NCBI GenBank assembly: GCA_963924565.1
Contig: OZ004607.1
Location: forward strand, 34,224,001-34,288,000
DNA length: 64,000 nt
Reading direction: 5' to 3'
Origin: Ascidiella aspersa
Taxonomy: Eukaryota
The notes under the pieces are model-generated. The model worked only from the letters and a program-made list of their open reading frames with translations, did not search any database and was not told the origin of the DNA. The stretch's first letter is position 1. Each line of letters opens with the position of its first letter. Below are positions 1,881 through 59,555 of this stretch, one piece after another. The position numbers and the translations under genes were made by a program.

Positions 1881-2260
1881 GGGTGACGTACAGTTTCAGG
1901 AGGACCATAGGGCGTTCCCCCAATTGGGCCAAGCGTTCCCCCCAATTGGCCCAGGCGTTCCCCCCAATTGACACCTCTCCCTCGGCGCCTAATCTGCCCT
2001 CTTTGCGGGTTGGTCGCTAACGACTCGCACTTGACTTCCCAGTGGATTCGGGTCCTTTAAGCTGCTGGGTGAATTTGTACAGTGGTGAAAAGGTTTCCGC
2101 TGGCTTAAAAGCGCGTAGTTGGTTAGTGGCAAATAAATGCAACTGTGTTTGTTCAGTTTGAAGCGCGCATTTGTAAAGGGGTGGCGCACACTTGGGTTAA
2201 GTTGGGTGACTTCCTGATGCCACTACAGATACGAATTTGTGGTAAACTGATACCCACCCC
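1881..2260. mobile_element. TTAA-flanked non-autonomous element (Kolobok-like) containing a 3-copy ~22-bp minisatellite
   Basis: TTAA|GGGTGACGTACAGTTT ... AAACTGATACCCACCCC|TTAA imperfect TIRs; internal GCGTTCCCCCAATTGG repeats at about 1910-1970. Confidence 0.55.
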
Positions 2261-5480: not shown

Positions 5481-7420
5481 TGAATGGCAATTATTTTTAC
5501 ACCTAGGGAGACGTTCTTGATCAAAACACGGGCGTTGGAATGCAAATTCAGTGTATTGCTGTTTTTGTAGACTTGCATCCTGCATTTGCAACTAAAGGAG
5601 GTTCGATTAAAACCTTTTAAATTCGTTTCGAAACAAAGTCAAACTTTTCTGAATGTCTGTATTTACGGTACGCCTTATTTTGCCAATTAAAGCGTTTTTT
5701 GTTGTTGTTTCGCTTACTGTAGTCCTCTATTTGTTATAGATTTATTTGGTTCTAGATAGATTGTTCTGAATAATGATTACATTAATTTTTTGTGACCGAA
5801 ACCTAAAAATATATACATTGTCATAGGCCTTTGTAAACTTCTCATTTTATATTGCACAGAGTTTTTTCGTTTTTCACCCATGTGGCAGACTGCATGCACA
5901 CAAATGTGCCGTACCTGGTTTAATGTTCGAATGTTTGAATGTTAAATATTATTTTGGAAGGACAAGAGGTGCCCTCTAGACATTACTCTTTGAATTGATT
6001 TTTTGTTAGGCATGTAACGCAGTTCTCTACCTAGGAATTAACTGGTGAAGTTCATTAAGTAAGTGGTCGTCAACCAGTGTCAAGCGGTTGTGTAAAAACA
6101 CGCCGTTTTCAGTAAACAATGTTGGTAACATGCTTTTTTGGTTAGTTACATAAGTTGTAACTGTTGGTTAAATATAGGCTACCCGTCCTTACCATAATAA
6201 ATTATATAGTATGTATGTAATTTTTCCTTAATCGAACACGGCAGCCTATTCGACTAAAAGCTTTTTTACGACATCAGGAACTAAATATTTACTCCCATGT
6301 CCGAACAAGAATATTCCTAATTAAATTAGAAAATTTTTCCGAGTAAAGCCGTGTACTGCGTGTATAGACGCGGTTGAACCAACCCATCCACATATATAGG
6401 TTGCTAGCAACGTCTTAACTCCGTGCCCGTCTTACGCGGTCGTGCGTGCTGTGTACGTCTGCGCGCGCAATCGCACTTTACGTGCATAGGTCTGCGTTGT
6501 TCAGGTGATTATCGCGCTTAATCTCCAAAGGTAGAGGAGTGTCCGAAGCGGGTCGGAGACCACCGCCGGATCGACACAATCCGATACAATTCCTTTTCTG
6601 CATACTCGGCTTAAAGAATGCTAAAAATGCCGCACCGCGACGCTCCAAATACGGCGCGAAGACGCTGACCTTATGACTGTGCGGCGAATTGCGAGTCGTA
6701 AACAATTCTCCGAGATACACTGATGCTTGGATCGCCTGGAATACTGGATTATAGCGGACGCCGTTCGGGCGCCTTGCCTCTTTCCAATACCTCGATTTTA
6801 CAACGAAAATTCCGAGTTTTAGTACTTTTGCAGATTGAAGCCGTTATTAAAAAGGGGCGTTGCTGGTAGACAGTTGCCCCGCCCCCTTTTTTGGATTGTT
6901 CCAACTTGAGCGTGTCCTGTTATTTCGTGTTATAATCTTAAGTTTTTTTAAAAGTCATTTTATGGTATATGTTGTACTTCTATACTGTGAGTCGAGACAA
7001 TTGTAGGGGTTACATTAATTTCACACAAAGTGTTACACTGTTCTATCCTTATGTGCCAAAATGTCAAAACTTTATGCCAAAATCGTACGTCAACTGAGTT
7101 CTACAATGATATAAAATCCAGTTTAAGAGAAATATAAAAGAGTACTTTTTATCACTGTCAAACATGAGGGGCGTGCCAAGTTTCAAATGCAATTAAATTG
7201 GATGAACAATGAAAAGTTCGGAAGCCCTACCTTGGGCTTTACGGCATTAACAGGCAAGGGATAACATTTAATAATTCTACTCTGCAGATACATATAATGC
7301 CGCAATAATGTCATATCGGGTTGCGTCCGACGTTTTAACAGCTTTTCGAGCGTGGTAAATATTTTGAAATCGCCTTAGCGTTTAAGTTTAAGGTCGTCGC
7401 GCGAAATCGTAAAGCGAGCG

Positions 7421-7971
7421 TATATAAAGAGGGAGAAAAATCGCAAAAGCTTGGGCGTCGTGCGCCAGAGACCAAAATAACAACTTAACGACGGCTGCTG
7501 CACGAAAATAACGTCAGAGCACAGTTACCACGTGACAACGCAAGGCTAGTTTGCGCACAGATCCGGTAAAAAATCTCGGTTGTCGGAGACAGGCTCTGAC
7601 GCTCCCGGATTTGCGGAGAAAAGCACGGAGCGGGTTTTTGGAGGAGATCGGCGATTCGCTGGCCCGCGCTATCTGCTCCAAAGACGAGAAACTCGAGAAA
7701 AAAGGGGCCGCAGGTATGCCGACGGCTTTAGAGAAAGGAGGCACGGCAAAGGCATAAATACAGGCGCTTGTGCTTTGAAAGGGTCAGTTGTGAATTGTGA
7801 GGCAAGACGATAGGAAGACATAAAAAGAGGCCATTTTTATCGTGGTGGAAGATAAAAAAATTAAAGTGGAAAAAATTGGATTCCGGGTTATTGTTAACCG
7901 TGATTTTCAGTTTTTACACCAAAAAAATAAAATTGGATTCAATCAGTTTTAAGTCTGCATCTGATCTGACG
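7421..7971 (+). promoter_or_regulatory. Putative thrombospondin TATA box and non-coding exon 1
   Basis: TATATAAAGA at 7421-7430 and donor G|GTAAGC at 7971/7972. The first coding exon has an acceptor (ttttcag, 8446) 63 nt upstream of the ATG, so it needs an upstream exon or trans-splicing. Confidence 0.55.
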
Positions 7972-8509
7972 GTAAGCGAGCCTTAAAGCTCTTTGCGGAG
8001 AATTTAATTAGTCAGGGCGTGTACCCGAACCCGTCAGACGCCCAATGCCGAAATTGGCGTCTGCCCGACACACGCGTAAGCCCCGTCGCCGCTTTTATTG
8101 TGCTGGCTGCGCTTTGAAATGGCTTTAGCGCGTTCGTGCGAGCCACCCTTAATCGAATAAGGAGAAGCCCGCACCTGCAAATCAACACAGGCCTGTAATG
8201 GAAGGCAATAAAAATTAGAACTTTCCGTATAGAGATTTGCCTAGAAGCGGCTTGTCGTTGATGTGTCCCTATATATAAGACCATTATATATAGGCAGGTT
8301 ATTGCTTTTTGTGAATTTAGAATAATACTTTTTTAGGCGAGCAAAGGCTTAACATTTATGTTTAAGTATTTGTTGTCGTTTTACGTATTCTTCAAGGGTT
8401 ATTTTTTCTGTTTGCTCTTTTAACATTGTTTTACCACATTTTTCAGCGCTATATTCGAATAAACCTGTTTTATCTGCAACAAATCGTTTTTCAAAGCTTT
8501 CTACAAACG

Positions 8510-35739
<27,230 letters not shown>

Positions 35740-39827: not shown

Positions 39828-42800
39828 ATGTCGTACACGCCGTGGGATCAAATGGACGATTCGTCTGACGATTATATAGAGAAGTTGAAAGAGATGGGAT
39901 TCAACGAACAGCAAATACGAAAGGCTGTCAACGATACAGGTAACTGCAAAGCCACTGGCAATTTATTTCCGTTGCAGAGAAGCGAGTATTACGGTGACAT
40001 AGCTTTATGTGTGACTTCAGTGCGTTGTCTATATGTGCTTTGTTGTAGGCCCCTCAATAATAAGCTTCCTTGGCACTGTACTTTCGTTTTTGAACGATAT
40101 ACAGAAAGTCTTATGATTAGCTAGTTTAGCCGAGAAGCCTTGGCTTTTAAGTAGGGCAGCCTACGTACAAGGCATTCTCTGTTCTGTCAACATTGACTTT
40201 ACTATAGATCAATACATTCGAACCTGCCGCTTATGTGGAATCGGTTGTGTTGCTTTATTGTAGGGTTTCTACCAGATATGACAAACAATAAAATTAAATA
40301 TTCGTCATTGGATACATGTTTCACGAAAAGTTAGAATTTAGTACAGTACATGTTTCACTAAAGGCATTTATCAAGCTAAATACATAATCCTTGCATATGG
40401 CGTTCTGCAAAATCTGTTCGATACTTTGAAAGAGTAACTGAAGCTTTGTAATTAACCTCGTTTTGTATAAAAAACTTGGCTTACAAATCAACGATAAGAA
40501 TACTTGCAGAATTAAACTTCGCGTTAACCGTAAATGGTAATTAATGTATGAACCAGCGCCGCTGCGTTTTTAAGCAATAAAGTCTGCTTTGTCACTCAGG
40601 CAATAACAACAATTCGCTGCGCTTGCTATAATTATGAAGTTGTGGCCCTTCGCGGAAGTAACCAATGCGGCTCTTTATAGTCTCTTACTGGTTAGCCAAC
40701 CCTGTACTTCGCCTTAGTTTAACCGCCGTTATATCGCACATGTAACGAAGTTATTCGACGTCATATTACCTAACATTTTACTCAAATACTATTGCATATT
40801 TTCACAGGCGCTTCACCCTCCCAAGCATCCATGGAGCTTTTAACCGAGTATATGTTCAACAACCCTATCAGCAGTAAGTGTAAATGGGTACCACAAGGTC
40901 GATTCAATAAATGTCCACCACGTTTTCGCTTGCAGTGGTTGGTTTAAAATCAACCGTTGTGTTACGCAGGTAGTCAACCGAGCGGGTCTTACTACACACC
41001 CTCGTATGAATCGCACCAGGACGACTACTATGAACCAGAACATGATATTCCCCAATCTTCAAGCGCCTATTCGCAGCCTCAAGGTCAACGTAAGTTGTCT
41101 TATCGTATTTTGAAGCATCTTTGTGTAACATATAGGCTTTTCAACCGGTGGATCCTTTATTATAAGGATGCATATGTCAGTTACTTAACATTTATAAATA
41201 AAAAAGTTAAAAAAACAGATCACTTGCTTTTATAAAATATGATTATTTTCCCGTAATCTAACATTAATTATATAATTCGATTAGATTTTTTGTCGACAAA
41301 TTTGTATTTTATGTAACTTTCCGTATTATAACGATGCAGGTAGCCTACATTTTAACAGAGTGGTTTGAATCAGCGTAACATTTAGAATATAATTTGACAT
41401 GAAACATTTAAAAAACGCAGATGTCCCCTGTGGCATCATGTTCTAAGGCCACTAGTTTATAGTTTTAATTTGCCTTATGCTGTTTCAATACAGAACGCTC
41501 TGGACGTTATAGTGCTGTCCAAATTGTACGCCCTGGTCGGAATGGTTCGTTTGAAATGGACTCCAACGAGCTTGAACGGGTGTTTGGTCAAGTTGCTGAC
41601 GTACCAGTTGCTGTGTATTCCTTGGCTGGTGCATTCCGCAAAGGGAAGTCCTTCATGCTGAACCTGTTTCTTCGGTACCTGTGGTTCCAAAAGAAAGGAC
41701 AGGTTAGCCGCCAAAACTATAACTTCAGTTGTTACCGACCCTTACCTTCCCCAAACAATTAAAAATAGTTCACTGCCAAAACAGAGGCGTCCAAATGTCC
41801 ATAATAGAACAGCCACTTATGGTATAATAGATAGATCCGCTTTAGACACTGTATTGCTGTGTGCTCCCATTCAAATAAACTACGTATGTGTATGTGTTGC
41901 ATTAGCTTATACCAGTGCTACCCGACATTTTTTAGTTTGCGACCCACTTTTAATGCAAGTTTAATTGTGCGACCCACATGAGATTTGACGAAACGAATAA
42001 AATTACATAAAACCTGTATCTTCACTACTATCGTACCTACTGACATAGTCAATAGGACACAACACATCTAATTCTTACGGATTTGTGATATTGTTACATA
42101 AATGTTACATACTGATAATGCAATAGTTTCCCACTATAATAAAAAACTGTAACAATTAGAAATGCTTGTCAACCCAACTGAAATGGAAAACGATACCGGT
42201 ATGTTTATAAATTAATGGAGTGTTTCCACACGGCATACGAAGAGTTAGGTTGAACAAACGGCTAAACAAAACTGCCAGTTAACCTAGGAAGGCTTGGTCA
42301 GTTCTTTACAAATTATCAACTGTTTCCAAAGGTTTAAATTCCCAACAGGTTTAAAATGTCGGATCTTAAACAGGCCATCAAAAGTCTTCTTTTGAGCCAC
42401 TTTTCGTATAATTCTTGCATTGTCCCAAGCCTGAGTTAATAAGCTATACGAGAGTGTTCCCACGTTGATTATATTTTGAGAATTTTTCCATGTTAATTAT
42501 AATTGAACAGTGTTTTCATGGTCTTAATAGCATATACTGTGGTTACAGTCTAACAACTGGCTTTCCAACAAAAACGAGGAGGTGCGGAAAGGTTTTGGTT
42601 GGAGAGGCGGACATGATCGAGACACACAGGGAGTCTGGCTCTGGGATGAACCGTTTTTCATAAAAACACCGAGTGGCGAGGTAAGAAGGTACAGGCATGC
42701 TAAAAAGGCTCTAGTACCAACAAACTTGAATAAGTATTAACATAGATAACCATAATTATGTCAACTTGTTTATTATTTAACAATTCATTTGTAGCGACCC

Positions 42801-45800
42801 AACCAAAAACCTTTATACCAATATAATGAGGTCACTATTTTTCAAGTGGCATGTGTTGCAAGTCCCAAAATTGCCATTAATTGTACAGTAATTTAACGTT
42901 CTATTTTTAAGTAACAATTGACTGGTACTTAAGAAATTATAAGATTACTTATTTGAAACTCTGTGATATGTTGTGCTTTCAGGTTGCCTTGTTTCTGATG
43001 GATACACAAGGTTCGTTCGATCACAACACTCCGGTCCAAGGGTGCTCGGTCATTTTTGCTTTGAGCACAATGATAAGTTCCGTGCAAATCTACAACGTTA
43101 TGCAACAGATACAAGAAGATTCGCTTCAGCATTTGCAGGTAAAAAACAAAAGATAAAAATGATGAGACTATTTTTGTTTTAAATCGTATATCGCATAATA
43201 TTTTTAACTTTATTATTTCAGTTGTTCACCGATTACGGCAAAGCAGCATTCAAAACTCGCAAGCTTGAGGGAAAACCTTTCCAGGTAAGATCAAAGCTGT
43301 TTACTGTCTCAAATGCTTCTAAGATTCACAGGCTTATAACCAGGGTTACCATCTGCTAAAACCAAAAAATAAGCACGCTACTAATAACTCGGGGCAGATC
43401 CAGAATTTTTTAGATTGCATCCAAACATAAATAATCCTAATAACAATTGTCATTCTCAGCGTCAAAAAGAGCTTAATGGGGCGAAGCACAAAAAATGGTT
43501 TTATTTGGTTGAATTGGTAAAACTTTTAATATAAAAGAAAACATGTCGCCTTGATTTTACGCTATGAGCAAAGGATTACAATATAAAAGAAAGAAATATG
43601 CTACCATACATAAATTTCCTGTATATGACGCCACATGCTCTTACTGGGCAAAACAAAATTTAAAACTATTTCGGGAAAGACTAATTTACATCGTAGTATG
43701 ATCCTCTTTTGGGAAGATCATGTTCGGTCACTTGGTGTTTAATTAAATTTACTTACCTTATCTACAGAATTTGCTGTTTCTGGTTCGTGATTGGCCAGAC
43801 CCAGAAGTCTCTTTCGGCACGAAAGGCGGTAGAAGTGTTTTGAACAAGTTACTCACTTTGAAAATGAAACACAAAGACTTGGAATCGGTCCGGGAAAACT
43901 TAACGAATTCCTACGAGGACGTTTCCTGTTTTCTGATGCCCTATCCTGGACAGACAGTGGCCGTCAGGGGAAAAAGCCAGGGAAGTTCTCTGCGACTAAA
44001 AGGTAAACTATAAAATGAAATGCTATAAAAATGTACAGATGTGGCCATAGATGCGATTCTGAGTCTGACTCGGGACTTGACGGAGTCGTTTTGTTTTGCT
44101 GGAGTCAGAATCGTGACTCGAATAAGACTACGTAAAACTATCCGAGTCCAGAGTACGACGTGCGCATGCGCAGTACCTAATTTTAAAACTGTTATGGCCG
44201 GGAGAAATTCTGAATATACACCTTATTTAAGTTTCGTAAATTGGTGAAAGGCATGCTGTAGAGTCGGAGCCGGGCTCGGGACTCGACGAAATCGCACATT
44301 TAGCCGGACTCGGGGCTCCGGAGTCCAACTCGGTTTTATTTTATTGGCTGGATTTGGACTCGAGAATTGGACCCGGGTTATTTTTGACTGATCCGCAGTC
44401 CTGGATGTAGGTCATCCGTTTATACGAGTTTGAAAGTTGTAATTAATTTGCATATGTAAACCAATCATGCGATTACCGGAATCCAACCGTTATTATTTGT
44501 TTGCATGTTCCAACAAATATTGTAAATGAACGTTTTATCCTTACAGATGTTGATCCGAAGTTTTTGCACCACTTGGATGAGCTTGTTCAGCATCTGTTTT
44601 CACCCCAAACAATCGTCATCAAGAGATTCAATGGCAATATTGTCAACGGGAGAGATCTGATCAACTTTATGCTGGCTTACTTCGAGGTGTTTAAAAGTGG
44701 ATCGATGCCTAAAGTTGGCAATATTTTGCAGGTATACCGGGCCTTGGTTTAGAGTTCGCGCGTATATTTAAAGAAAATAGTCAAAACATAGGTAGTTTAA
44801 TGTAAAAAAATGGGATTTTATAAGAAGTGAGTCAAACCAGAGTAGGCCTAATTATTATTGTTGGTAAATAAACCAGGTGTATTATGATACGTTTTTTCCA
44901 CCGTTGAGAACCGCCAAACTTGGTTATGCCTACTCCGAACTTTAAAATCGGGAAGCTGTGAGTCGAAAATGTTTGCACATCAGTGGCGTGAAAAGAAAAA
45001 TAAAGTTGTGCTCGTTCTTTCGCTGTTTAAAGTTAACAATATGCGTTAAACTCACAAAATAAAGAAATCAAAAAAAAAAAAAAAAAAAAAAAGTTTTGGT
45101 AGCGTTTCTTGCCTAGCCATTGTTTAGACTTTTCTTGGTGAATTAAAGTAAGCGGTAATAAATCGACATCGGCGCCCACTCGCTGTACACCGTATCTCCT
45201 ACGCGATAATGCGCACTGACTATAGAGAAACCAAGCCCACACTGTTTTTTCTGTTTGCAGGCCAGCGCAAAAGCTGCCATGATCACCGTCATTCAACAAT
45301 GCAAGGAAACCTACGCGAAAGAAATGAGCAAGGTTGGTAAAGAGTCAAACCTATCTTTTAAACACCTAGGACTAAACTTACCAAATACCGCTTTGCCCTT
45401 GGCATATTACACATTTCCCAACCGATGCTCTGCGGTAACAAAAACAAGCTGAAACACTAAAATTACGGGTTGTCCAGATGCATTTCATTTCAGTTATGAT
45501 TTTTTTTTATTTCAGTTTTGTTTTTATGTTGCTTGGTGCAGGTTTTTGAGCAGGTTGGTTTCTTGGAAGGCCAAAAACTTTGTAAACGGCACGAAAACAA
45601 CATGCAACTGGCCTTGTCTCAATACGACGGTCTTCCCAAGCTCGGAGACGATTCATTTATTACCAAGTCCAGACGGAACTTGATCGATCTAATAAACCAG
45701 CAGTTTGCTGTCCACGAGCAAACTAACATCGCTCAAATGGTAAATTTTACGGCCGCGCTAAACTTAATGTTGAGCTTTTTTGACAATTATGGTCCCAAGT

Positions 45801-48800
45801 AGAATCAGCCGCTGAATTGTTATAGAACCGAAAGTTAAAAGTGTAATATGTAGAAGTTATATTCCTACGTAACCTCCAAGTATAAAGTGCTTACATATTT
45901 ATACAATTTTCTATTACTAGCTAACAATTTCAACACTTTAAATACTTTAATTCGAGTTGTCACAGAATAATTTTTTAACACGTTAATTTTAAACCGTGTC
46001 TTCATCCTTGTTTACAATGAATGGTATTTCAGGAAAGGATGAAAAATCAAGTTCGTGATGTTGTAGCAGAAGCCGAACAACAATATTTAACCAGCCTCGA
46101 AACTGTGAGTTTACTTCTGCAGTTGTACATTGTCAGTGTAATGAAACGATAAACGTCACAACTATCACTAATAAGAACTAAATCAATGGTTTCTCGAAAG
46201 GTTGCAAATAACACAATTTAAAATCCATTTACAACTATTCGTTTTAGTTTCAAACTGTCTTTTATTACACCCAAACACAGTAGCAAAGCTAAACCTAATT
46301 CCATCTTGGCGTTTTACAACACGGCATCCATAAAAGTTACGAGCTATTGTCAGTTTATAGCCTGCTTGTAGTTCGGGTTGTGTTCGGGTTGCACTTAGAG
46401 CCGTAACACAGACGTAAAAGCATGCGGTTGGATTCCATGTCGTTTTTTTTACAGCTGTAAGCATCGTTTCTTGCATGTTAACATGCCGATGAGATAAAAA
46501 GCGTTCAAACTTTAAATTTAAAAAGCTTGACTGGTTAACTTAATATGAAACCAGTTTGCCAATGGCGAATTCATGGATGGCGAGGAATTTCGCCGAGCGG
46601 ATGATGAGAGCCGTAAAGCCGCCTTGGCCTTGTACAAGCAAAACACTAGAGAATGTCCGCCAAAGTTCGTGAAGAAATACAAAGACAAGCTCGTCGAGCT
46701 TATGGAGCAAGCACTCAAGCGCTTCAGAGAGGGAAACAACCACAGAAGGGTAATATTGCCTTTTTCTATTCACGTCACGCGAAGTGTAAGCTGCATAGGG
46801 AATACCCATTAGCGTGCAGCGGGTTTTGTCATTGCACCTTTCTTGCGAAAACAAGTACAGTATTATTCTCGCCAGGAAGAGGTTCATTTAAATATAATTT
46901 TTTTTGTGTTACCTGATATGACTGAAAATAAATCTTTCAGTTCCACAATAAGGATAGGAAAAAACATTTTAATACAATTTCATTCTATGCAAATTCGGTT
47001 AATCTTATACTCCAGTGCTTCTAGTGCTGCACATGTTTGTACTTTTTATGATGTCACGTTTTAAAGTAATTTTCTGATATCGTGTTAAAAGTCATTCCTC
47101 CCCCCCAAAAATGCCCTTAATATAATCTATAACGGTGGTTCTCAACCGCCGGTCCGCGGAGCTTTTTAGTTGCATACTTTTGTCATATTTGCATTTTGGG
47201 TTGATTTTGATATTTGAAGGTCAACCGATCCGCAAAATTTGTTTTGAAATTGTACCGGTCCGTAAGATAAAAAAGGTTGAGAACCACTGATCTATAATGA
47301 CGTTTAAAATATTTTAATCTAAAGCATATAAAGCAATATACATACCGTTTTAAACATCTTCAATGCCATTAAATGACCCGTAAGCTAATATTTTTTTTGT
47401 TATGTAGGACGAGTTGCGACGTGGGATCGAGAGTCAAAAGTTTGCGGCCCTCGATGCTTACGCAAAAGGAATGGACGAGGTAACAGATATTCGCGTGTTT
47501 CACTTCTGTTGCTGAAACATATAGGCTAAATTGCTTCAAAACTTGAACTTTGTGTGTTTATATCGAACTTTTTCTTCTGCTATAGTACGGTGGAAACATA
47601 GCCAAATATACATTATAGAGAGAAAATTTGTCTTTTGCCACAAAGACGTGATATATAAGTTACAAGTAGGACAAATAGGCTACAACTATAAACAATATTA
47701 TGGAGACTCTGCTATCAAACAACAAGGACTATTTTATTTCTCAACACGCCCCAAACTAACACAAACCATTTGTTAACAAGCAATAACACATTTCTTAACA
47801 GCGGTAACCAGCACAGAGTCCTTTCTTAACCGGATTTAAACCATCTTTTGGCATGCAGTAATTTATTCCCCAGCGGCACTAAAGTATTTTGTAAAAAACA
47901 ACAAAGCACACCTTATTTAGCACCAACTATTTCGTAATAAGAAAAAAAATCATTCCTTTCGTTGCAGCAATGCAGGGACACTTTCCTGGAAGATCACGAT
48001 TTCGAAAATGCTCACGAAACATCGCAGAGAAACGCGCTGGAAATTTTTGATTCCTCCGAAGTCGGAAGAGGAACTGATCTTAGAAACGAAGAGCGGGAAA
48101 GACTTCTAAGGAAAATCGGGGAAGAACAAAGGAAGATGAAACAGACCAACGACATTAACAAAGTGATTTATATAAATACTTTTCTACTTGAAATACCAAG
48201 CTCTGTGTTTTTTGATTAACCTTATTATATTTACCTTGCGATTGGAGATACATTTCATCGTCACTGTTGCTTATGCTTGGTTAATCGTTTTTGCCTTTCT
48301 ACTTTAAAATACATTTTCCTAATCAACAATTGTCTTGTGTTTTGCAGAAACTAGCGCATGCCAAGACACTTGAAGCAATGAACCAGGCTAAGAACTTATA
48401 CAATACTGCAATGCAAGATGTAAGTATAGGCCTGACCTATAGGCTGCAGGTAGTGGGCTACAGAACTATTACACTAGCCTCGGTATTGTTAAAATCAGTT
48501 CTATTTACCAGGGTATACTGAAACAGTTTCGCACAGGGAAAACAGTGCTTTGCGACCGTTTTTCGGTGGTGTACCTTTAATAACTTATTAAAAACTTCGT
48601 ATAGGTTCACCTCACTACTTTGCACCCAAAGTAGAAAAAAACTAATATAAAACCATGTTAATTGGTAATACATCTGGCCACAAAACGAAGGAACCGGAGT
48701 AGTTGCTAGTAGTAAAAAAATGCAGCACAGATCACGTAAATGAAAAGAAAATAACACAGGTATGACATGCACACATACTGACCTAATCCATATAGGCCAG

Positions 48801-51800
48801 GGGTGTCCAACTCAAACATGCCGGCGTGCCAGTTTTTTATCTTATAACTTCTTCCCGTGCCGAAGTTTAATAAATAATTTAGAATATTGAAAGCGATTTT
48901 TTTAAGTAATAAAAACGTTTATTTGCACATAAAAAACATTTCTTTATTTAATCAAGCAAACCATTCATATTTAACTAAAAGCTTAGGTAGGCTAACTATG
49001 TAAAGGCTAGCCTCCACTACAGTATAATGTTATAATATCAGTTACAAGTAATTGTTAGTTGTCGAAATTGTTTAATATTGTGAATAAACAATAACCATTG
49101 GCTGTATAACAAATTAAGCATGTTTTGACAATTTGCTGGATAAGAAATTAAGTATTTTAAATTGGCTGGGGCTTGTGTGCCATTTTTTATTAGGTCGCGT
49201 GCCACATGTTGGAAACCCCTAACATAGGCCCACCCTTCGTATACCTCTTATCAGTTGTGCATCCTGGCTTTGATTCGGTTTTACACCCGAATATACAGTA
49301 TAGGCTACCCGGCACTGATATACACTACCGTACACTAAGAGCACATCAAACCGTTGCTAATATTTTTTATAGGCCGGCATTTCTGAGTACACAGAAGAAT
49401 CTCGTCTCAAAGAAGCACATCGTGAAGGCAAAAAACAAGCCCAAGCAATCATCATGTCATTAGCGCAAGACAACCAGGCTTTGGCTGAACATTGCCGCTC
49501 ACAACTGGACGAATTTCTCGACAACGAATTCGACATGATCAAGCGTAGAAACGAAAACTTGGGGGTAGGCTAACTCACGGCGGCCGGACGGTTACTTTTC
49601 AAAAGAATTCCTAAGTTTTGGAGCATAATGGTTGGAGGTTGTAGTAAGACGTAATAAGAATATCAAAGCCCATACAGAAGTAGGTATCATTTTAAACGTT
49701 TCGAATAACTCTTTATTCATTTTCAACATAGAGAGAAGGCACTGATGGTAAGTGTATATATAATGCTAAGGCAGACGTCAGAAAGAAGGAAACGTGGAGA
49801 GATACACTATCTAAAACTCCTAATTAGTTGTATTATACAACAACTTGTATACCCAGAAAGGATGTAGCTGTGCATTTTTAGCCAGGTTTATTTTTGTAAG
49901 CACTTTAATTTGGTGATTTTTCGTGGTTATAAAATGCAGGGATGTTTAGTAAAGGTAATAGATAACGGAGGCTGGTTTCTCATAAAGCATGTTCCCATCC
50001 CTCGTTAAAAATCCCTTACAACGCTAAAATTCGTACCGACAGATTGGCAGACAAACCTTGATAGATAGAAAAACATACATAAAAATATTTCGCTAAATCT
50101 ATCCTTATTCTTTACTAGAATCATTTTAGATTTGAACTTCAGCCATTTTTAGATTTGAATTAAAATTACCAGAGGAGCTGTTTTTGTATTTGTATTACTA
50201 TGCCTGGTAGCAACAGTTTACATATTAAACTTAAGAATTACAATTACCACAAGTCCCCAACTTTTAAAAACTTTTTACGAATTTCCTTGAACTTAATTTC
50301 CCATTGTTACGTCAGAAAAGCAAAATACAATTTTTAAACAGAAGGCAAGACACTTTTGTCCAGTTTGTTATGCGTGTTTAAATTCGAGACGCTGGTCTGG
50401 AATCCTACCACAACAAGCTCAACTATTTGGGTTACGATGCGCGTTTGGGTTTGGGTGGGTTAAGCAATATTATTAATAATAAATTTCAAAGAATTAGAAA
50501 AAAAATAATAATAATTCAAAGAATTAGAAAACTAGAATTATCTAGTTGTCCAAGTCTGCCTAATACCCAATCGCTAACCCAAATAATGTGCGTTACTTTG
50601 AAAATTGTTTTAACGGTGTGGCAGGATTCTAGACCTGCGCCAAATTCGATTCCTATTGACCCTGGTTTAGGTTTAACAGACTTAAACTTAGCGTCGTGAC
50701 ATTTTTTACAGAAACTGAAAACACCAATAAAATAATTTCAAAAATGTGGGTCACCTTCTAGTTATTAAATTCACTTTCTAATTCGTTTATTTTGTTTTAC
50801 AGCAAAAGGCACGAAATGGATTTGAGAAAGCAAAGAACAACGCCTACATATTCTACCAACGAGGAATCGACGAGGTAACTTAACTAAAAAGAGGCAGACT
50901 ATGTGATAGAAATCTTCTAGTACAGCTTACTTTTATTCCAGTACAACTTACTTTTTTATATTTTTCAAGTTAGCATTACGATTAACGATCAGTGATCAAT
51001 AAATCTTTAAAAAAAAGAGTATCCTATTGACTTTTTTCGCGGGCTTGAATTACGCAACATGTTATAATGTACTTTGATAAAAAAGTAAATTTGAACTTTA
51101 ATTAAAGATCCAATATATAATGATGTTAAGTGCAAGTGAACCACAGTACAGTGTTTGATGAATGGTTATACATATAATGGTAACCAATGTAAATTATTGT
51201 ACAACTTTGACAAAAACAACTGCAATTTGTATTTCATATCTCAAGGAAAGTTTTTCCTGATTGGTCCACAACCTAAAAAAATTATCTTTTTTACTTGTAA
51301 AACTAAATCAGAGCTACAGCTAGATTTGTCAAATTATCTGTTTTGATTATTATTTTTTTTTGCTTTAAACAGCTACGTCCAGAAAGTTAAATCTTCCAAC
51401 AAACTGCAAAATCCCTTTTTCCACGTTTTTTACAAGATGCATGAGAAATAACTCAATTTTCTAATAACTTGTGAATTTAGTTTATGTTTGTTAGAGGTAT
51501 GCTTTCAAAAATCAAACTACAAGAAAAAGGGTGACACAGCCCTATTTTGTAAATAACATTTCCAAAGACAAGATGTTTTGATAATAGCTTATCTAGGAAA
51601 CAATAAACTACTGCTAAGTTTGCAAGCGTAAAGAAAAATAACCTACAAAAACATATATTTGAATTTATTTATTTTCCAAATATATTTTCTATCTTTATAT
51701 GAAAACGAATAATAACAAACAGTAATCTCATAAACAGAGGCAAGTGAATTTAAAAAAAACAAAGCAAAGGTGAATTTTAAACAATGCTTTTCATTTATTT

Positions 51801-54800
51801 ATGTAAGTTGGTCTTACCACATAAACAAAAAAATATTGAATAGAAATCTATGAAATAAAAAATCTACCATTTACTAATATATGTTAGCTTTAGGTGTTAT
51901 AGGTTTTCCCAAATTTCCTTGTCATCTTTCCAAACAATTTTCCAACGACTAGGTTGTTCACAGTCATCACCTTTGGATTCAGAACAGATTCTGTTAAAAG
52001 TATGGTCCCTGTTAAAGCACATGATTTCACGCTCTTCCTGGATCCTAAAAGAGAATGTCGATTCTTTTGTGCCCATAAAATAGCGTGCATGTGAGCAAAT
52101 TATTTGGTCTATAATAGCAACACCGCCCATTTTATATTGTTTCATTTGCTTTTTGCTAGGTGTAAACATAACCATCTCAGGTAGTAAGCTTTTCAGATCA
52201 TCCATTTCTTCTTCAGTACCATCAGATGCGATGAACACCTTGTCAACTTGAAATTCAGCCATCTTCTTCTTAAGATGATCGGCAACTGTCTTTAAGGATG
52301 GCACGTATTCTTTTCTTGCATAGAGGAAATCTTTTCTTCTTAAATGTGCAGCGATGTATGGGCCCCCCAAAGCAGTTACCCCCTCGCAGGAGTGGTCTTT
52401 CCAATTCGGCGGGATGACAGTCTTGTCTTTCATGTCATCAGAGTCCAAAAATTCTTTGCGAAATTGATTGGCCTCATTTATCAACATATCAGAAAAGATC
52501 ATACTTCTCCGACAGTCCCAGTAGTTTTTGCCGCCGAACATGTCATGAAGCATGTTTTCTGCACGATCTAACATGATGGACTTTGCAGTTGTGTTTGTCC
52601 CGCACAGAGGTTTAATAAAGATGTCAGATTGGCCCTGCACAGAGACGCACTTAAACGAGTGGGCATATGTTTCTTCATAACCCCAGAACCAGCCCCTGAT
52701 TGTGTTGGTGTCCTCGTCAGTTTCGTAAACAGGTGGTTCTAGGCACTCGCGCTGGTGCATTTTTTCAACCCACTCTCCCGACGTCCAACCTTCAGCGTAG
52801 TTTTGCAAATACCACACTTCGTCGATAGCTGGTTCACCAATTTCCTCGACATAATCACTGTACTCCAAAACTGGAACATGAAGGCCTAAACTTTTTATAT
52901 TGAAAAATTTTGACCATGGGATTTTGCTCTGTTCCATATCACTTTCTTTCCAATGATACCCAATTCTACCCCAAGGTGGTAGAACTAAAGTCCAGTCGTA
53001 TTTTTTACAATCGTCACTTTCTCTCATTGCCTTCACAAGATTGGCAACTCTCATGTAGACATCTCTCCTAAGGTTAAAGCCCTCACCTGGATTGCAGTCG
53101 TACAGCAAATAGCGCTTCTGCTTTTCAGCCGCTGTACTCAGACAAATGAAAAGTGACAGTGATATGAATTTCAGAAACATCCTCATTGGTCCTAAATATA
53201 TATAAAAAATTATTAATTTATACAAATACTTTAAAATCATAGTTCTTGATTTTTTAAAGATACAACATCAAAGAACTGAATGACTTGAATAATACATTTT
53301 ATCATAATAATAAACTGTGACCTACAAGTTTTTAATATTAAAACAACACAAAATCCATAATAGATTTAATTAGAAGGTTATTTTTAAGTTTAACATTTAG
53401 TTTTTTTTTTAAAACCATATTTTAAGATGTGAAATTATGTTTGTTTGAACATCTGAATCTGAGGTTTAAAAAATTCAAATTTTTTTTTAAATTAAAATGG
53501 TGCACACAAATAAATAAAAGATGTGATTGAGCACTGGCTTAATAAAATTGTGATTTTACACCTGTCTTAAAACATGGACTGGACTGTATACCTGAAAAGA
53601 GTGAACCATACCCTAGGTTCTGAACTCTACAACAATTCAAACTTAAAAATTAAGTAGTGCAACTTACTAATTCAGGTTTGCGCACAGATTTTTCATAAAG
53701 TCTTAGGTGTGCACTTTTTTATACTTGATACAATAAAGGTCTCAACTTAATTTTAAGTTAATTTACTGTTCAGCAGAGCTACTGCATTTAATTGCTATAA
53801 CTTACTGTGAAGCACAACTATATCAATGACAGAAAATAATTTAACCTTTCTCAAATAATTTCACTATTGTAGCCTGTTAAAGTTTTTACTGCCGCAGGGC
53901 ACAACATAAAAAATCGGGCAGCCATTGACTGAATTGCACGGCTTTTGTGAGGGCCACGTGAAAAACTGTAAGCCCGAGGGCAAAAGCTGTTAAAACATGA
54001 CGTGGCAACACAAAACATTTGATACATCACCTTCTTATCCCAGCAGATAAAGTTACATTTTTGTTTTTGAATTCACTAAAACGTGCTGATTAGGCTTGTA
54101 AACTTTCGCCGTGGCAAATACTGAACTGACTTTATTTACTTATTTTTAAATTAAAAGTTCTGCTGTGCCTCCATTTTATGTCTGTTTAAAAACAGAAAAA
54201 CTAACGTTACCAGCATTTTGGTAGGGAGCTAACTTTAAAAACATATCACATGTTTAATTAAAAAATTATTTAATTCCAAAACAATCTAGCAATATACGAA
54301 TCAAGTTTAAAATAACTATACGAACGTTAAAAGTCGTACCAATCGGTAACAACCATAAACCGGTGCATAATACATTTCTATACTAAATAACACGTTATTT
54401 GTGTGAAGTAGTGACAATTTAAATTGATAGGTAGACAAGTGAATCATGTTTTAACTAGTACAACATGTACATCGGGGTCTTAGAAGGCAAGAAAGTTATT
54501 TCGTTCTGGTTCTTAATTTGAAGGATTTGCTCAGGCATGACCACTACGTCTGTTGGTCATGCAAGACTGAACTTGTGTGTACACAAAGTCTGGCGATAGC
54601 TGTGTGTTGGTCAAAAAAAATTGGCGACAATAAACACCCGATCCGTTAGAAATCAGTGCATTTCTAAGCAAAAAGGTCTACGACAATCAGGGCATCCAAT
54701 GGCAGAAAAGTCTAGACTTTGAGGTCCTGGCAATGCACTGATTTGGACCTTAAGGTAAACTCCCGGCGGAGATAAATGAAAAATATTCATTAAAAGTTCA

Positions 54801-56991
54801 GAAAAAATAACAAAAAATATGAGATAGGATTAATAACACTTGACCCACCTAAACCCTAACGCTAACCCGAATCCTAACCCAAATAATGTGCGTTATTTTA
54901 ATAATTCTTTAAATGCTGGGGAAAAAAGCCCAAACTCGGATGGGCATAAGATGGTTTCTCGTCCATTGTATTTAAGATTATTACGTCACAAATTGAGGTA
55001 TTGGGTCCTGAAGCTGAAGCGTTATAATTATTAAATTATCGCACATTATTTGGGTTAAGGCGCTGGTTAGCGTTTGGGTTTGGTTGGGTCAAGTATTGTT
55101 AAATTTAATCTTCTTATGCACATTTGTTAATGCAACTTAGTGCATTGTCCAAGACATCAAAGTCTAAAAGTCGGACTTTTTGATCCTTTGAATGCACTGA
55201 TTGTCATAGACCTTTTTGCTTAGAACTGCACTGATTTCTGACGGATGGGGTGCAATAAACCACACGGTGGTATTATATGCGACATTTCTCTACAATCACA
55301 ACAGAGCTAATGAATCATTTTTGTCGAAACTATACAATTAAATTTTTTTACCAAATATACAATTTCAAGATTTCACTGCGTTGCCAAAAAAGACATACAA
55401 AACTCAACATTCACTTAACAAACAATTTTTTGGTCATGTTGTCATTATATTTGCATTACAGTAATAATAATTTTACAATCGTTATTTAAAGAATAATCAT
55501 TAATGCTTAAAATAGTTTTAAATTACACACATCCTAATTGCATTCTATATATTATAGGGACTCAAAAAATATTTTTTTACCTTAATCTTATGCCCAACTT
55601 CTCTAACGGAAAGGGACTGAAATGCAATCAGGCCCAATTGCATTCCAGTGTGTTTCCGCCAGAGATCTTTGGCATGGAATGCTTGCCAAAAATCACGCCG
55701 GTGACATCATTAATTATGAAACATCACTGGGCTTGTGAATTTACCAATACAAAATTGTCTTTTTGGCTTATATATTGTCTTATTTTAGTGTGGGATTTCA
55801 GCGAGAAAAAAATTTAGCGTGAATATTTGGCGGCATTAATAAATTTGTTTGGTTCACTAGTGTTTGAGTAAACAATTCATCAAAAATATTTTACTTTTTT
55901 AAAGATATTACTGTTTTACACAAGAAAAATGGTTTCTAGTGCCCACAGCGATAAACAAAACATGTAAATATGGAAATAATACATAAGTCGTTTTTCTGAT
56001 AAGATCACCCTATTAAGACAAACATATTTTTGTAGTTAGGCTAATACATGTTACGTTGCTTGTGAAATATCCCTTAAGGTGTATATAATTAGTGCAATTT
56101 TGATATTTATAACAAAAAAGGTTTTGTTGTAATATTGATCTGGACAACAAAATTATACTAAACAGGCTTAGTATAAATGAAATTACTGGAAGAGGTCAAT
56201 GGAGAAATTTGTCTTTTCAAAGATGCAACTTTTGTCGCTGTGTAACCCAATATACTTTTATATTTCTCCATTTTTTTTTTTAAGTATTTAAAACCTATTT
56301 TAAGGGATCACAAAAATTTGAAGAAGAGCAATACTTAAACAGAAGACACGAACAACTCAAGAATGGAGCTCTTCAAGATTATGAACGAAACACTGACAAA
56401 CGACCGCTAACAGATTTTCAGGAATTTCATCGCAAGCTAGATGAGGACATTGAAAAGCACTTTGTTGCAGTTAAGGAAAGAAATGCAGAAAACAAGGTAT
56501 TTGTTGTCATATCCTTTTAAATAAATGTACTGGAGTGCTGTATTGCCTAATACAACTGCTTGGGACAAGCAATACTTTTAAACAAGAAAATTCCTAGTAA
56601 GAAGACGATTTATGTTCACTTTAAAACTCTTTGTGCTCTAAAGCTCTCTCAATTGGCATTAAGATTGTCAACTGTTTTCTTGAATCATACATAACTGTAG
56701 ACACATTTAGTGGCCCAATTTAAGAATCATGCAAATGCTGTTAAGCCTTTTCTTTCCAAACTTTAATCATCGGAAAGAGTAAATCATAAAAAGAAGGTGC
56801 ATCTTATTTTGATGTGCAATTGTCAGTATTTGCATGACAGATGCTGATGATTAATTTATGACTGCACTAGGAAACTAGCATGTTTAGCAAAAGTAAGGCA
56901 CAGGTTCAAACCAAATTAGATTTCTAATACCTACTTCTGACGACATAGTTGTTATGTTAAAAACCTAAAAAAATGGTGTTTAACTATTCGC

Positions 56992-57026
<35 letters not shown>

Positions 57027-58119
57027 TTCTCTTGTTATAATTGAAAGCTGGATTTAAAAATGAGAAGTGGTAAATTAAAAACATCTTTATTTCTTTTATT
57101 CATGCTTGTTCATATATTTGAAATATGCAACACACATTTAAAACATTCAGTATTATAAGACAAAATGTATACAGAAAAATAGCCTTAGATATATTATAAG
57201 TATATGTAAATAATATAAACCGGCAACTGTTTTCCTTTAAATTTTGTTTGCAAAAGTTTAAACTGCGTTCTGTTTTTTCAGCAAAGAGTTGTGGAGAAGG
57301 CAGATAAAGCCTTAGAAGATATCAAAGAAGAATACCTAAAAACTATGAATGAAGTAAGTTTTGCAAAGATTTAATGTTTTTCAAAATAATTTTTTTAGTG
57401 TGTGGTCTAATGCATTCGGTATTTACTAGCTATAAATCAAACCCAGCTTACTTACATATACCTTCAACTTTTTGTTTACCCTTGGCCGCTTTCTTGATTG
57501 TAAAACTTGCTAGGGTTTTATAATTTCCAATCTGGCTTCATTAATTTAGCTTTGTGACGGAAGATCAGTTGAACCAGAAGAATTGGAAAAGTTTCACCGC
57601 AAAATTTTGGAAATGAGTGATGCGAAAATCCACCAAACACTTGGAAACAAGGAAATTGCAGATCGGATATCAAAGAAACTTCATCGCTATGCCGATGCGG
57701 AACTTCCAAAACTGAAAGAAAACAACAAGAAAGGCGCATCAATTTGGATTCGAAAAGTGTTAGCTGCACTGCCACAAGCACTTATGCATGGCGCACAGAT
57801 GTTCTTCACCAACATCAGCCATCCTAAACGAGCAGTAATGGCTGGACTTGCTGGCGCTGCAAGTTTGGTGAGCGGCGTATTTTCAGATGACAAAGAAGGT
57901 GACAAGAAGCAAGATGCCGCCTTGGACAAGTTTACCCAGCAAAAGTGGGAATCTCTCTCCCCATCAACAAGCGTTGATCCTAAACCTGAAAAGCCGGCAT
58001 CTTATAAAACCGAAGCCCCTCCTCCATACACAAGACAGGCTCCTCGGAGCTCTAAGTCAAATACTCCACAACAATCCTCTTCACAAGAAAGAAAAATGAC
58101 CCCGGAGAGTTTGGACTAG
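39828..58119 (+). CDS. Atlastin-family (GB1/RHD3) large GTPase with N-terminal UBA-like domain and six tandem three-helix-bundle repeats, isoform A (~1083 aa, 21 coding exons)
   Basis: Exons: 39828-39939, 40808-40873, 40970-41089, 41494-41702, 42549-42680, 42983-43138, 43222-43284, 43768-44002, 44547-44731, then pairs 45261-45332/45542-45739, 46033-46104/46555-46749, 47408-47479/47968-48162, 48348-48419/49373-49564, 50803-50874/56305-56496, 57282-57353/57550-58119; total 3252 nt, open frame. G1 GAFRKGKS, G2 [15 protein letters not shown]3 [22 protein letters not shown] and G4 FLVRDW all match atlastin. UBA-like segment [18 protein letters not shown]...ELLTEYMF. Confidence 0.9.
44046..44403. 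mobile_element. Degenerate MITE with GGAGTC/GACTC subterminal repeats
   Basis: Many GAGTC/GACTC motifs, right end GATCCGCAGTCCTG, possible TSD GATGTGGC / GATGTAGG (6/8 match), and internal palindrome TGCGCATGCGCA. Confidence 0.6.
47133..47289. mobile_element. hAT/Charlie-type MITE (157 bp)
   Basis: TIRs CGGTGGTTCTCAACC / GGTTGAGAACCACTG; exact 8-bp TSD ATCTATAA at 47125-47132 and 47290-47297. Confidence 0.9.
48798..49221. mobile_element. hAT-type MITE
   Basis: TIRs CAGGGGTGTCCAAC / GTTGGAAACCCCTA; 8-bp TSD ATATAGGC / ACATAGGC (7/8 match). Confidence 0.82.
50388..50641. mobile_element. MITE related internally to the 54635-55252 element
   Basis: TIRs GACGCTGGTCTGGAATCCTACCACA / TGTGGCAGGATTCTAGACCTGCGCC; exact TSD AAATTCGA (50380-50387, 50642-50649). 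Shares TAACCCAAATAATGTGCGTTA and GCGTTTGGGTTTGG motifs with the 54.6-kb element. Confidence 0.8.
51897..53186 (-). CDS. POFUT2: GDP-fucose protein O-fucosyltransferase 2 (~429 aa), intronless CDS nested antisense in an intron of the atlastin-like gene
   Basis: Motifs [22 protein letters not shown] (catalytic Glu), [49 protein letters not shown]. Signal peptide [21 protein letters not shown] minus-strand acceptor (tatatttag|gaccaATG, exon starting 53191) places the start at 53186 rather than 53240. Minus-strand AATAAA at 51794-51799. Confidence 0.95.
   Translation of the reverse strand: MRMFLKFISLSLFICLSTAAEKQKRYLLYDCNPGEGFNLRRDVYMRVANLVKAMRESDDCKKYDWTLVLPPWGRIGYHWKESDMEQSKIPWSKFFNIKSLGLHVPVLEYSDYVEEIGEPAIDEVWYLQNYAEGWTSGEWVEKMHQRECLEPPVYETDEDTNTIRGWFWGYEETYAHSFKCVSVQGQSDIFIKPLCGTNTTAKSIMLDRAENMLHDMFGGKNYWDCRRSMIFSDMLINEANQFRKEFLDSDDMKDKTVIPPNWKDHSCEGVTALGGPYIAAHLRRKDFLYARKEYVPSLKTVADHLKKKMAEFQVDKVFIASDGTEEEMDDLKSLLPEMVMFTPSKKQMKQYKMGGVAIIDQIICSHARYFMGTKESTFSFRIQEEREIMCFNRDHTFNRICSESKGDDCEQPSRWKIVWKDDKEIWENL
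54635..55252. mobile_element. Long-TIR foldback MITE (possibly Mutator-like) with CCCTAA-like internal motifs
   Basis: Imperfect palindrome: ATCCGTTAGAAATCAGTGCATTTCTAAGCAAAAAGGTCTACGACAATCAG versus CTGATTGTCATAGACCTTTTTGCTTAGAACTGCACTGATTTCTGACGGAT. Inner inverted TAACCCAAATAATGTGCG / CGCACATTATTTGGGTTA. Flanked by the direct repeat CAATAAA(C). Confidence 0.85.
56995..57022. repeat. (AT)n microsatellite
   Basis: Uninterrupted AT run in an intron. Confidence 0.9.
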
Positions 58120-59222: not shown

Positions 59223-59555
59223 CTCTGCGACGGCAAGTACGTGGATCCGACAGCGTTGCAAGATGCGCACGACAAAGTACTCCAAGAACTGAAGCAGGAA
59301 TGCAGAGAAAAGCTGCGCGGGTACGACGATCTGGCTAATAAATTGCTCGCGGCATGCAGCTCTCAACTGGAAACCCTGTTTGAGCAAGTCAAAGCCAACA
59401 ATGAGAATAACAAGTCAACTTGGCTGCGCAAACAGGGCAGTGCCTTGTGGTCTGCAACCAAAGGAGCCGCTTATGGGTTCTTTTTTGCACCCCCTGGCTT
59501 TCGTCTTTTCGGGGCTGCCATAGGTGGTATAATTGGCTACATAAAGGGATTGTGA
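59223..59555 (+). CDS. Alternative terminal exon (isoform B, ~1004 aa) of the atlastin-like gene; paralogous to exon 57550-58119
   Basis: Phase-0 acceptor gctttcag| at 59222. Begins LCDGKYVDPTALQDAH versus [16 protein letters not shown] in the other terminal exon, and the two share N..K..S.W.RK. Ends in a hydrophobic Gly-rich segment and TGA, with AATAAA at 59796-59801. Confidence 0.8.
   Translation, partial: LCDGKYVDPTALQDAHDKVLQELKQECREKLRGYDDLANKLLAACSSQLETLFEQVKANNENNKSTWLRKQGSALWSATKGAAYGFFFAPPGFRLFGAAIGGIIGYIKGL

Follow-up and report, generated by a model that had tools for sequence, protein, structure and literature searches.

A tunicate atlastin-family GTPase gene whose predicted stalk is a tandem array of six three-helix bundles

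Atlastins, guanylate-binding proteins (GBPs) and Sey1p are the textbook cases of a GTPase (G) domain joined to a helical stalk that does mechanical work on membranes, with one, two and four three-helix bundles (3HBs), respectively. In canonical atlastins the single 3HB is followed by a transmembrane (TM) hairpin. What kind of protein results, then, when an atlastin-type G domain is followed by six such bundles? The question is raised by a gene of the tunicate Ascidiella aspersa on contig OZ004607.1 (assembly GCA_963924565.1), within the 64,000 nucleotides from position 34,224,001 to 34,288,000 of the forward strand; this whole stretch is called the window here, and positions are counted from its first letter unless a contig is named. 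A sequence-only reading of the window had described an atlastin-like GTPase with a six-fold repeated bundle. We lean, with moderate confidence, towards a divergent large GTPase of the atlastin family whose rod of six 3HBs would serve as a GBP-like tether or coat rather than in endoplasmic-reticulum (ER) fusion.

The gene model was assembled from stop-free stretches and splice-site scanning of the window. Six GTPase exons at 41.5–44.7 kb on the plus strand lie upstream of six exon pairs (Table 1). The two peptides quoted in the sequence-only reading were recovered on the plus strand at 45261–45332 and 57282–57353, and the splice-site scan bore out its exon chain, in which each pair behind the GTPase exons consists of a 72-nt exon (a) and an exon of 192–198 nt or the terminal exon (b). 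The a exons are all exactly 72 nt long, b exons 1–5 measure 198, 195, 195, 192 and 192 nt, and the sixth is the terminal exon. All stalk exons are in phase 0 with lengths divisible by 3; their acceptors are AG after a pyrimidine tract and their donors GT, without exception. A P-loop with an Arg finger (GAFRKGKS), a DTQG motif and an RD motif (VRDW) can be read in the translated G domain, which is of the GBP/atlastin type by Pfam (PF02263). Atlastins are its best solved relatives by sequence; Sey1p was not among the matches of the G-domain exons to solved structures.

BLAST of the exons against the window returned no match between one unit and another, so profiles were needed to test for a repeat. 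The b exons align almost without gaps and follow the pattern F/Y.E...L...H......AL...L...F......N, with one invariant N; the a exons share an invariant Y at position 18 and M, L or I at position 22. When each b exon was scored against a hidden Markov model of the remaining b exons, the scores ranged from 12.6 to 24.7 bits (z 5.7–12.2), and none of 2000 composition-matched shuffles equalled any of them. The a exons, with 24 amino acids, gave a weaker signal, their leave-one-out scores being equalled by 4–225 of 2000 shuffles. Run over the window in six frames, the two profiles picked out six exons of the a type and seven of the b type and no more; the best of the other matches stayed below 8 bits. 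The last b-type exon, 7b (59223–59555), was considered as a seventh unit; this was rejected for want of an a-type exon in front of it.

On the stalk exons Pfam returned no credible match, and the origin of the units was sought with profiles. Searched against solved structures, the profile of all b exons had its top match in residues 360–413 of Drosophila atlastin, within the 3HB (E = 0.003), followed by ATL3 and ATL1 at the equivalent place. A profile of units 2–5 recovered no atlastin among the solved structures; the same profile scored 24.1 bits on residues 361–422 of the canonical atlastin encoded elsewhere in this genome. Across 98 canonical atlastins from many phyla its mean best score was 12.8 bits, against decoy maxima of 3.0 bits for reversed and 3.7 bits for shuffled sequences, and about 90% of the best matches started at residues 330–420, where the 3HB is located. 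That the inner units find the canonical bundle by themselves argues that they too are homologous to it. We conclude from these profiles that the stalk units are homologous to each other and to the atlastin 3HB, in agreement with the sequence-only reading, and that six units derived from this bundle stand where the atlastin family has a middle domain with a single one.

The units are apparently used in series. Run X3, the kind of which is not recorded, behaves like RNA, with high depth over exons and almost none in most introns. Its contigs were compared with a section of the stalk of about 6000 letters, reaching up to 51 kb. Three joints, all GT..AG, connect 1b to 2a, 2a to 2b and 4b to 5a (positions in Table 1), and mutually exclusive use is therefore excluded for those units. 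The closest database protein, Clavelina lepadiformis XP_076818141 (983 amino acids, auto-named 'guanylate-binding protein 7-like' and called P0043 below), has six contiguous units of 86–93 amino acids in the same order as the window. The locus is a real, expressed gene, and with the spliced joints and the Clavelina protein the proposed serial use of the units holds. A spliced X3 contig over 45539–45738 has 11 mismatches to the window in 200 exon positions; since the inverted paralog described below is far more distant than that, the mismatches are probably allelic or population variation and probably point to very high heterozygosity.

An AlphaFold model of the natural P0043, made with a 25-sequence alignment, stands in for the window protein, the exons of which are 40–70% identical to it. 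Mean pLDDT is 82.4, with about 85–95 along the stalk, and pTM is 0.57. Behind the G domain, helices occupy residues 394–425, 432–452, 459–514, 522–543, 549–604, 611–632, 643–696 (kinked), 703–728, 730–782, 791–810, 818–873, 880–902 and 907–930, and by DSSP the long helices 459–514, 549–604, 730–782 and 818–873 are shared by neighbouring bundles. Residues 77–487 of the model superpose on ATL1 residues 29–439 with Z 41.6 (root-mean-square deviation [rmsd] 2.8 Å over 387 residues), and Foldseek TM-scores for the G domain and first bundle against ATL1 are 0.82–0.88. A stalk-only database fragment, P0041, gave a confident model for two units. Unit 1 of this model fits the ATL1 3HB with Z 13.2 (rmsd 2.1 Å, 91 residues), and the two units together fit the GBP1 middle domain with Z 10.8 (rmsd 3.3 Å, 190 residues); the fit to the Sey1p stalk (5ca8) has Z 10.1 over 165 residues, and spectrin-repeat pairs reach only Z 7–8, noise level for helical proteins. 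The spectrin-like chain of bundles that had been proposed is what the P0043 model displays, as 3HBs with shared long helices. We estimate from helix lengths that such a rod would be about 25 nm long.

When units 1, 2, 4, 5 and 6 of the window are matched to the Clavelina paralogs P0043, P0060 and P0067, each has its best match, or one close to the best, in the unit of the same rank, and this correspondence by position implies that the six-unit array is older than the split from Clavelina. When the stalk region of P0043 was used as the query of a homologue search, two Clavelina proteins were the only matches. In Ascidiella itself, an inverted paralog lies about 105 kb downstream (C1:34389255–34404714, minus strand) and has the same exon chain, its 72-nt a exons flanked by AG and GT. 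The ratio of nonsynonymous to synonymous substitution rates (dN/dS) between the two copies is 0.25 in the G domain and about 0.34 in the b exons. For the a exons it is 0.56 overall, a value that includes a misregistered 2a pair, and 0.13–0.76 in the four that are correctly paired. Judged by these ratios, the stalk is under purifying selection that is slightly relaxed. The idea of an old, selected expansion is upheld by the positional correspondence with Clavelina and by the b-exon ratio. Synonymous divergence (dS) between the copies is 0.03 in G3, 0.08 in 5a and 0.3–0.8 elsewhere, and the very low values suggest patchy gene conversion between the window gene and its paralog.

At the N-terminal end, the putative UBA-like exon of the window matches residues 10–38 of P0043, where the AlphaFold model has three short helices. 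A UBA-like N terminus is present in P0043, P0060 and P0067, and this fusion seems to be conserved with Clavelina. A Tyr/Ser/Gln-rich open stretch at 40948–41110 (plus strand) lies upstream of the GTPase exons.

At the other end, exon 6b continues past the bundle with two weakly hydrophobic Gly/Ala-rich segments split by N-x-x-H-P, then with a disordered Pro/Ser-rich tail. Its closest match is the tail of P0067 (E = 9e-14), and a PPxY motif is kept in tails of this type (PPPY in the window, PPSY in P0067). Exon 7b is a diverged copy of 6b (30% identity, E = 2e-8 by BLAST) with its closest matches at the C termini of P0043 and P0060 (E = 1e-19 to 1e-23). As it lacks an a-type exon of its own, 7b would be an alternative partner of 6a, and it is predicted to be an alternative last exon to 6b. 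In Clavelina the two tail types occur in separate paralogs (6b-type in P0067, 7b-type in P0043 and P0060); in the window both lie behind a single 6a. The highest 19-residue Kyte-Doolittle window is 1.41 in 6b and 1.44 in 7b, whereas the canonical atlastin of this genome attains 2.34 along a stretch of more than 40 residues, and a classical TM hairpin is therefore not supported: neither exon has the two TM segments of the atlastin type, and the membrane hairpin expected by analogy is not evident. A monotopic or peripheral anchor at the C-terminal end is possible. Neither exon encodes a CaaX box, 6b ending in ESLD and 7b in IKGL, both without Cys at position −4. The C-terminal ends of relatives vary, with a strong hairpin in Ciona P0058, tail anchors in Styela P0005 and the fly proteins and nothing in others, and RefSeq isoforms of relatives differ either in whether the last exon has an anchor or by the omission of exactly one 24-amino-acid segment.

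How does this architecture compare with known systems? The window gene shares with atlastin the GBP-type G domain with its GAFRKGKS P-loop, DTQG and RD motifs and, through the Clavelina homologue, the fold of the G domain plus first bundle. It differs from atlastin in its six bundles, the UBA-like N terminus, the PPxY tail and the lack of a convincing TM hairpin, and also in belonging to a multi-copy tunicate clade that exists beside the canonical atlastin of the same genome. In Sey1p, four 3HBs joined in the same manner make up the stalk with which it fuses the ER, and shortening of this stalk abolishes fusion (PMC4576867). A long stalk therefore does not rule out fusion, and it is not safe to argue, as the sequence-only reading did, that six bundles make too long a stalk for atlastin's crossover mechanism of fusion. 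The likeness of the P0043 model to Sey1p/RHD3, with several 3HBs sharing helices, is one of build and not of membership. The model scores only Z 19.7 against Sey1p compared with 41.6 against atlastin, and its G domain is not of the RHD3 type. The four bundles of Sey1p, unlike those of the window gene, are not recognisable as sequence repeats; its G domain is of another subfamily, and it has a true TM hairpin and proven ER fusion activity. The GBP1 stalk begins with two 3HBs arranged like 3HB-1 and 3HB-2 of Sey1p (PMC4576867), and stalks with several 3HBs are already known from this branch of the dynamin superfamily.

GBPs and the window gene have the same G-domain superfamily and clustered, multi-copy genes in common, and the two-unit P0041 model superposes on GBP1 as described above. 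GBPs are unlike the window gene in their GBP_C domain, CaaX box and back-folding alpha12/13 helix, and the G domain of the window gene is nearer to atlastin. No match to GBP_C (PF02841) was found on the stalk exons at E ≤ 1; a scan of the genome with PF02841 was also without a match, but the controls were likewise silent. GBPs coat their targets, which supplies the working analogy for the window protein. Spectrin repeats resemble the stalk as tandem three-helix bundles linked by continuous helices that arose by duplication (the stalk exons being in phase), but their unit is about 106 rather than about 89 amino acids long, and there is no spectrin Pfam match on any stalk exon. Among the long atlastin-like proteins that we found, the sole one with functional data is BmAtlastin-n of Bombyx mori, a long, TM-less, cytoplasmic atlastin homologue that restricts the baculovirus BmNPV (PMC4926086) and microsporidia (PMC9005921). 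Going by its description it is like the window protein in being long and of the atlastin type without a TM segment; it is an insect protein, however, and its middle domain is not described as 3HB repeats. No GBPs were found in Ciona (PMC4926086), and a review asks whether atlastins took over the defence functions of GBPs in animals without them (PMC9005921).

The window gene is one of many. The genome searched (308.6 Mb, 75 contigs) contains 26 or more G3 exons of the atlastin type (E < 1e-10) and 109 b-type exons, the latter clustered behind G3 exons on C1, C3 and C6. From 1 to 16 b-type exons lie behind a given G domain; this count was considered as a per-gene repeat number and rejected, as it includes alternative last exons and is also inflated in one C3 gene by a duplicated three-exon block at the 3' end; counts at the protein level were used instead. 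This block, which resembles 5b, 6b and 7b, is tandemly duplicated in C3:7747500–7757499 (offsets 1011–4745 and 6420–9912) with 93–96% nucleotide identity, and is a recent 3'-end duplication inside or behind one family member. The separate canonical atlastin (C2:4449085–4450680, 532 amino acids, 590 bits to Drosophila atlastin) is intronless, a single uninterrupted open reading frame (ORF) unlike the many-exon family members; possibly a retrogene has taken the place of the original copy here.

Repeat number varies widely between proteins. A unit profile was iterated on the 180-odd proteins collected; 127, the canonical atlastins, have one unit, and two, three, four, five and six units were counted in 10, 13, 14, 3 and 10 proteins, respectively, with single proteins at 7, 9 and 11. 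Planococcus citri and Amphibalanus amphitrite have three units, Bactrocera oleae and Ceratitis capitata four, Ciona intestinalis four and five, Clavelina lepadiformis six in three genes, and Styela clava 3, 4, 6 and at least 9. Two proteins of the ostracod Darwinula stevensoni, P0013 and P0034, have 7–11 matches to the unit profile; P0013 lacks a GBP G-domain match in Pfam and P0034 is named 'J domain-containing'. Either the 3HB module also occurs outside GTPases or, perhaps, these two gene models are fragments. The six-bundle locus does not stand alone in its architecture, which is already present, unnamed, in the RefSeq proteomes of several tunicates and arthropods. Automatic names there ('GBP7-like', 'uveal autoantigen...-like', 'PFB0145c-like') are misleading, and a correct description would improve annotation. 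No description of atlastins with tandem 3HBs was found in open-access papers and preprints, subscription journals being outside the search. What is new is that the bundles are recognisable tandem repeats, arisen by exon-pair duplication in a protein of the atlastin clade.

A G-domain tree, which did not include the window's own protein, unites all tunicate multi-unit proteins in a single clade with SH-aLRT 95; the canonical atlastin of the genome falls outside it, among ordinary metazoan atlastins. The multi-unit proteins of flies are nested within insect atlastins, and their stalk was therefore lengthened independently of the tunicate clade; on this tree the multi-unit state must have changed three times or more. 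On sequence grounds we assign the window gene to the tunicate-specific, multi-copy clade, distinct from the housekeeping atlastin.

Taken together, the protein would consist of a likely UBA-like N terminus, a G domain that is catalytically intact by its motifs, six 3HBs and one of two C-terminal exons, each with merely weakly hydrophobic segments. The stalk would have arisen by repeated duplication of the exon pair that encodes the atlastin 3HB (72 nt and about 195 nt, both in phase 0), with an elongated rod as the result, built similarly to the four bundles of Sey1p and the two of GBP1. The G domains would dimerise in a GTP-dependent manner, as in atlastin and GBPs, and the rod would determine how far the end with the G domain and UBA is kept from the opposite end, which would bind membranes weakly and in an isoform-dependent way. 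Such a protein may act as a long-range tether or a coat on endomembranes or on ubiquitin-marked targets, with a possible GBP-like role in cell-autonomous defence instead of ER fusion. We favour a GBP-like tether or coat because a housekeeping atlastin is retained, the family is clustered and multi-copy, the anchors are changeable and both UBA and PPxY are present. The proposed role draws on the weak terminal hydropathy, the conserved UBA-like and PPxY elements, the antiviral activity of BmAtlastin-n and the reported absence of GBPs from Ciona. The function is possibly linked to ubiquitin.

Several points weigh against a GBP-like tether or coat. The case of Sey1p shows that a protein with a long stalk of 3HBs can still be a fusogen. 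Structural support was obtained on a Clavelina homologue with only 40–70% identity, and not on the window protein; with a pTM of 0.57 the P0043 rod need not be straight, and the Z scores that the inner units reach against solved structures do not rise above noise for helical proteins. Among the X3 rows listed, 3 of 11 stalk junctions are represented, all before 51 kb and from a run of unrecorded kind. No sign of positive selection appeared in dN/dS against the inverted paralog, and an arms-race effector might show some. Strong TM segments also occur in some relatives (Ciona P0058, Styela P0005 and Bactrocera P0003).

The hairpins and tail anchors of the Ciona, Styela and fly relatives would suit a specialised fusogen or tether that works like atlastin or Sey1p at a particular organelle, with a six-bundle lever and a degenerate but functional hairpin anchor. 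Sey1p both fuses with its four likewise-joined 3HBs and needs that length (PMC4576867), the G domain and unit 1 of the P0043 model superpose on the full cytosolic domain of ATL1, and a motif at the position of the atlastin TM hairpin (W..K...A / N..HP.K.A.GL.G) is conserved between 6b and P0067. We nevertheless consider this explanation unlikely, as hydropathy maxima of 1.41–1.44 are under the usual TM range and far below the 2.34 of the genome's atlastin, a canonical atlastin is already available, and many copies with changeable ends are unusual for a housekeeping fusogen. The protein could instead be a soluble rod of structural or scaffolding type: a GTPase head with a regulatory function would sit on a spacer resembling spectrin, and neither defence nor the remodelling of membranes would be among its tasks. 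No clear TM segment is present, purifying selection acts throughout, and the chain of 3HBs with shared helices resembles spectrin-repeat pairs. Those matches are at noise level and have no Pfam counterpart, the units derive from the atlastin 3HB, and targeting, more than pure scaffolding, is suggested by the UBA, the PPxY and the conserved hydrophobic segments at the C terminus, which makes a plain scaffold quite improbable. That the six pairs are alternative cassettes, with one or a few per transcript giving ordinary one-bundle atlastin isoforms with differing stalks, is highly improbable: phase 0 keeps any combination in frame, isoforms in Ciona and Styela differ by exactly one 24-amino-acid segment (one 72-nt exon) and single exons may be skipped now and then, but X3 contigs link 1b-2a, 2a-2b and 4b-5a, all six units are present in the Clavelina models, units 1–5 have no anchor or stop of their own, and the shared helices of the model require adjacent units.

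Table 1. Exons of the six-unit GTPase gene in the window, with the observations on which each is based (X3 joints are given as last/first position).
Feature	Position	Strand	Observations
Putative N-terminal UBA-like exon	39828..40010	+	Boundaries provisional; Pfam UBA_7 E = 6e-5, 23.3 bits, under the curated cut-off
GTPase exon G1, P-loop GAFRKGKS	41513..41702	+	5' boundary provisional; 58% identity to Clavelina P0043 residues 82–140
GTPase exon G2, switch I region	42549..42680	+	Translation, splice sites, match to Clavelina P0043
GTPase exon G3, DTQG motif	42983..43138	+	Pfam GBP PF02263 E = 2.4e-18; closest solved relatives atlastins, E = 8.6e-17
GTPase exon G4	43222..43284	+	Splice sites; 76% identity to the exon of the inverted paralog
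GTPase exon G5, RD motif LVRDW	43768..43984	+	Pfam GBP E = 1.5e-8; donor leaves phase 1
GTPase exon G6, end of G domain and linker	44547..44731	+	Splice sites, match to Clavelina P0043
Exon 1a, first helix of 3HB-1	45261..45332	+	72 nt; 58% identity to Clavelina P0043 residues 400–423
Exon 1b	45542..45739	+	198 nt; X3 contig spans 45539–45738, joined to 46033
Exon 2a	46033..46104	+	72 nt; X3 joints 45739/46033 and 46104/46555, both GT..AG
Exon 2b	46555..46749	+	195 nt; leave-one-out score 24.7 bits; X3 joint from 2a
Exon 3a	47408..47479	+	72 nt; same 72-nt exon in the inverted paralog
Exon 3b	47968..48162	+	195 nt; unit alignment and leave-one-out test; X3 depth exon-like
Exon 4a	48348..48419	+	72 nt; a-exon alignment, splice sites, profile scan
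Exon 4b	49373..49564	+	192 nt; X3 contig begins at 49373, with 112 more letters upstream; joint 49564/50803
Exon 5a	50803..50874	+	72 nt; X3 joint 49564/50803
Exon 5b, after a 5.4-kb intron	56305..56496	+	192 nt; leave-one-out score 24.3 bits; matches Clavelina P0043 residues 796–847
Exon 6a	57282..57353	+	72 nt; a-exon alignment, profile scan
Exon 6b and terminal part	57550..58119	+	Two weakly hydrophobic segments, disordered PPPY tail; stop 58117–58119
Alternative last exon 7b	59223..59555	+	Predicted; second copy of the unit-6 b part; Gly/Ala/Phe-rich hydrophobic end

The introns of the stalk hold further features. An intronless antisense ORF of 447 amino acids (51897–53240, minus strand) lies in the 5.4-kb intron between 5a and 5b and matches Pfam O-FucT (E = 3e-50), the domain of GDP-fucose protein O-fucosyltransferase. 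High-copy repeats occupy 47000–47400, 48600–49400, 49600–49800 and 50000–50600, where all three runs have contig depths of up to 1e4 to 1e6 and chimeric joints are numerous; they are probably transposon fragments.

The finding shows the bundle as a duplicable module, encoded by a phase-0 exon pair and present in 2 to 11 units per multi-unit protein, which provides a natural series for relating stalk length to tethering, fusion or coat formation. This large multi-unit atlastin family may do another job than the usual ER fusion, and it bears on the question, raised in the GBP literature, of defence functions of atlastin relatives in animals without GBPs (PMC9005921). A bolder proposal, which we regard as speculative and improbable as it stands, is that tunicates, reportedly without GBPs, turned the atlastin scaffold into clustered defence GTPases, with the number of 3HBs as a molecular ruler and with UBA and alternative last exons targeting ubiquitin-marked or membrane sites. 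If this is true, the sister group of vertebrates would have invented cell-autonomous immunity of a GBP-like kind on its own.

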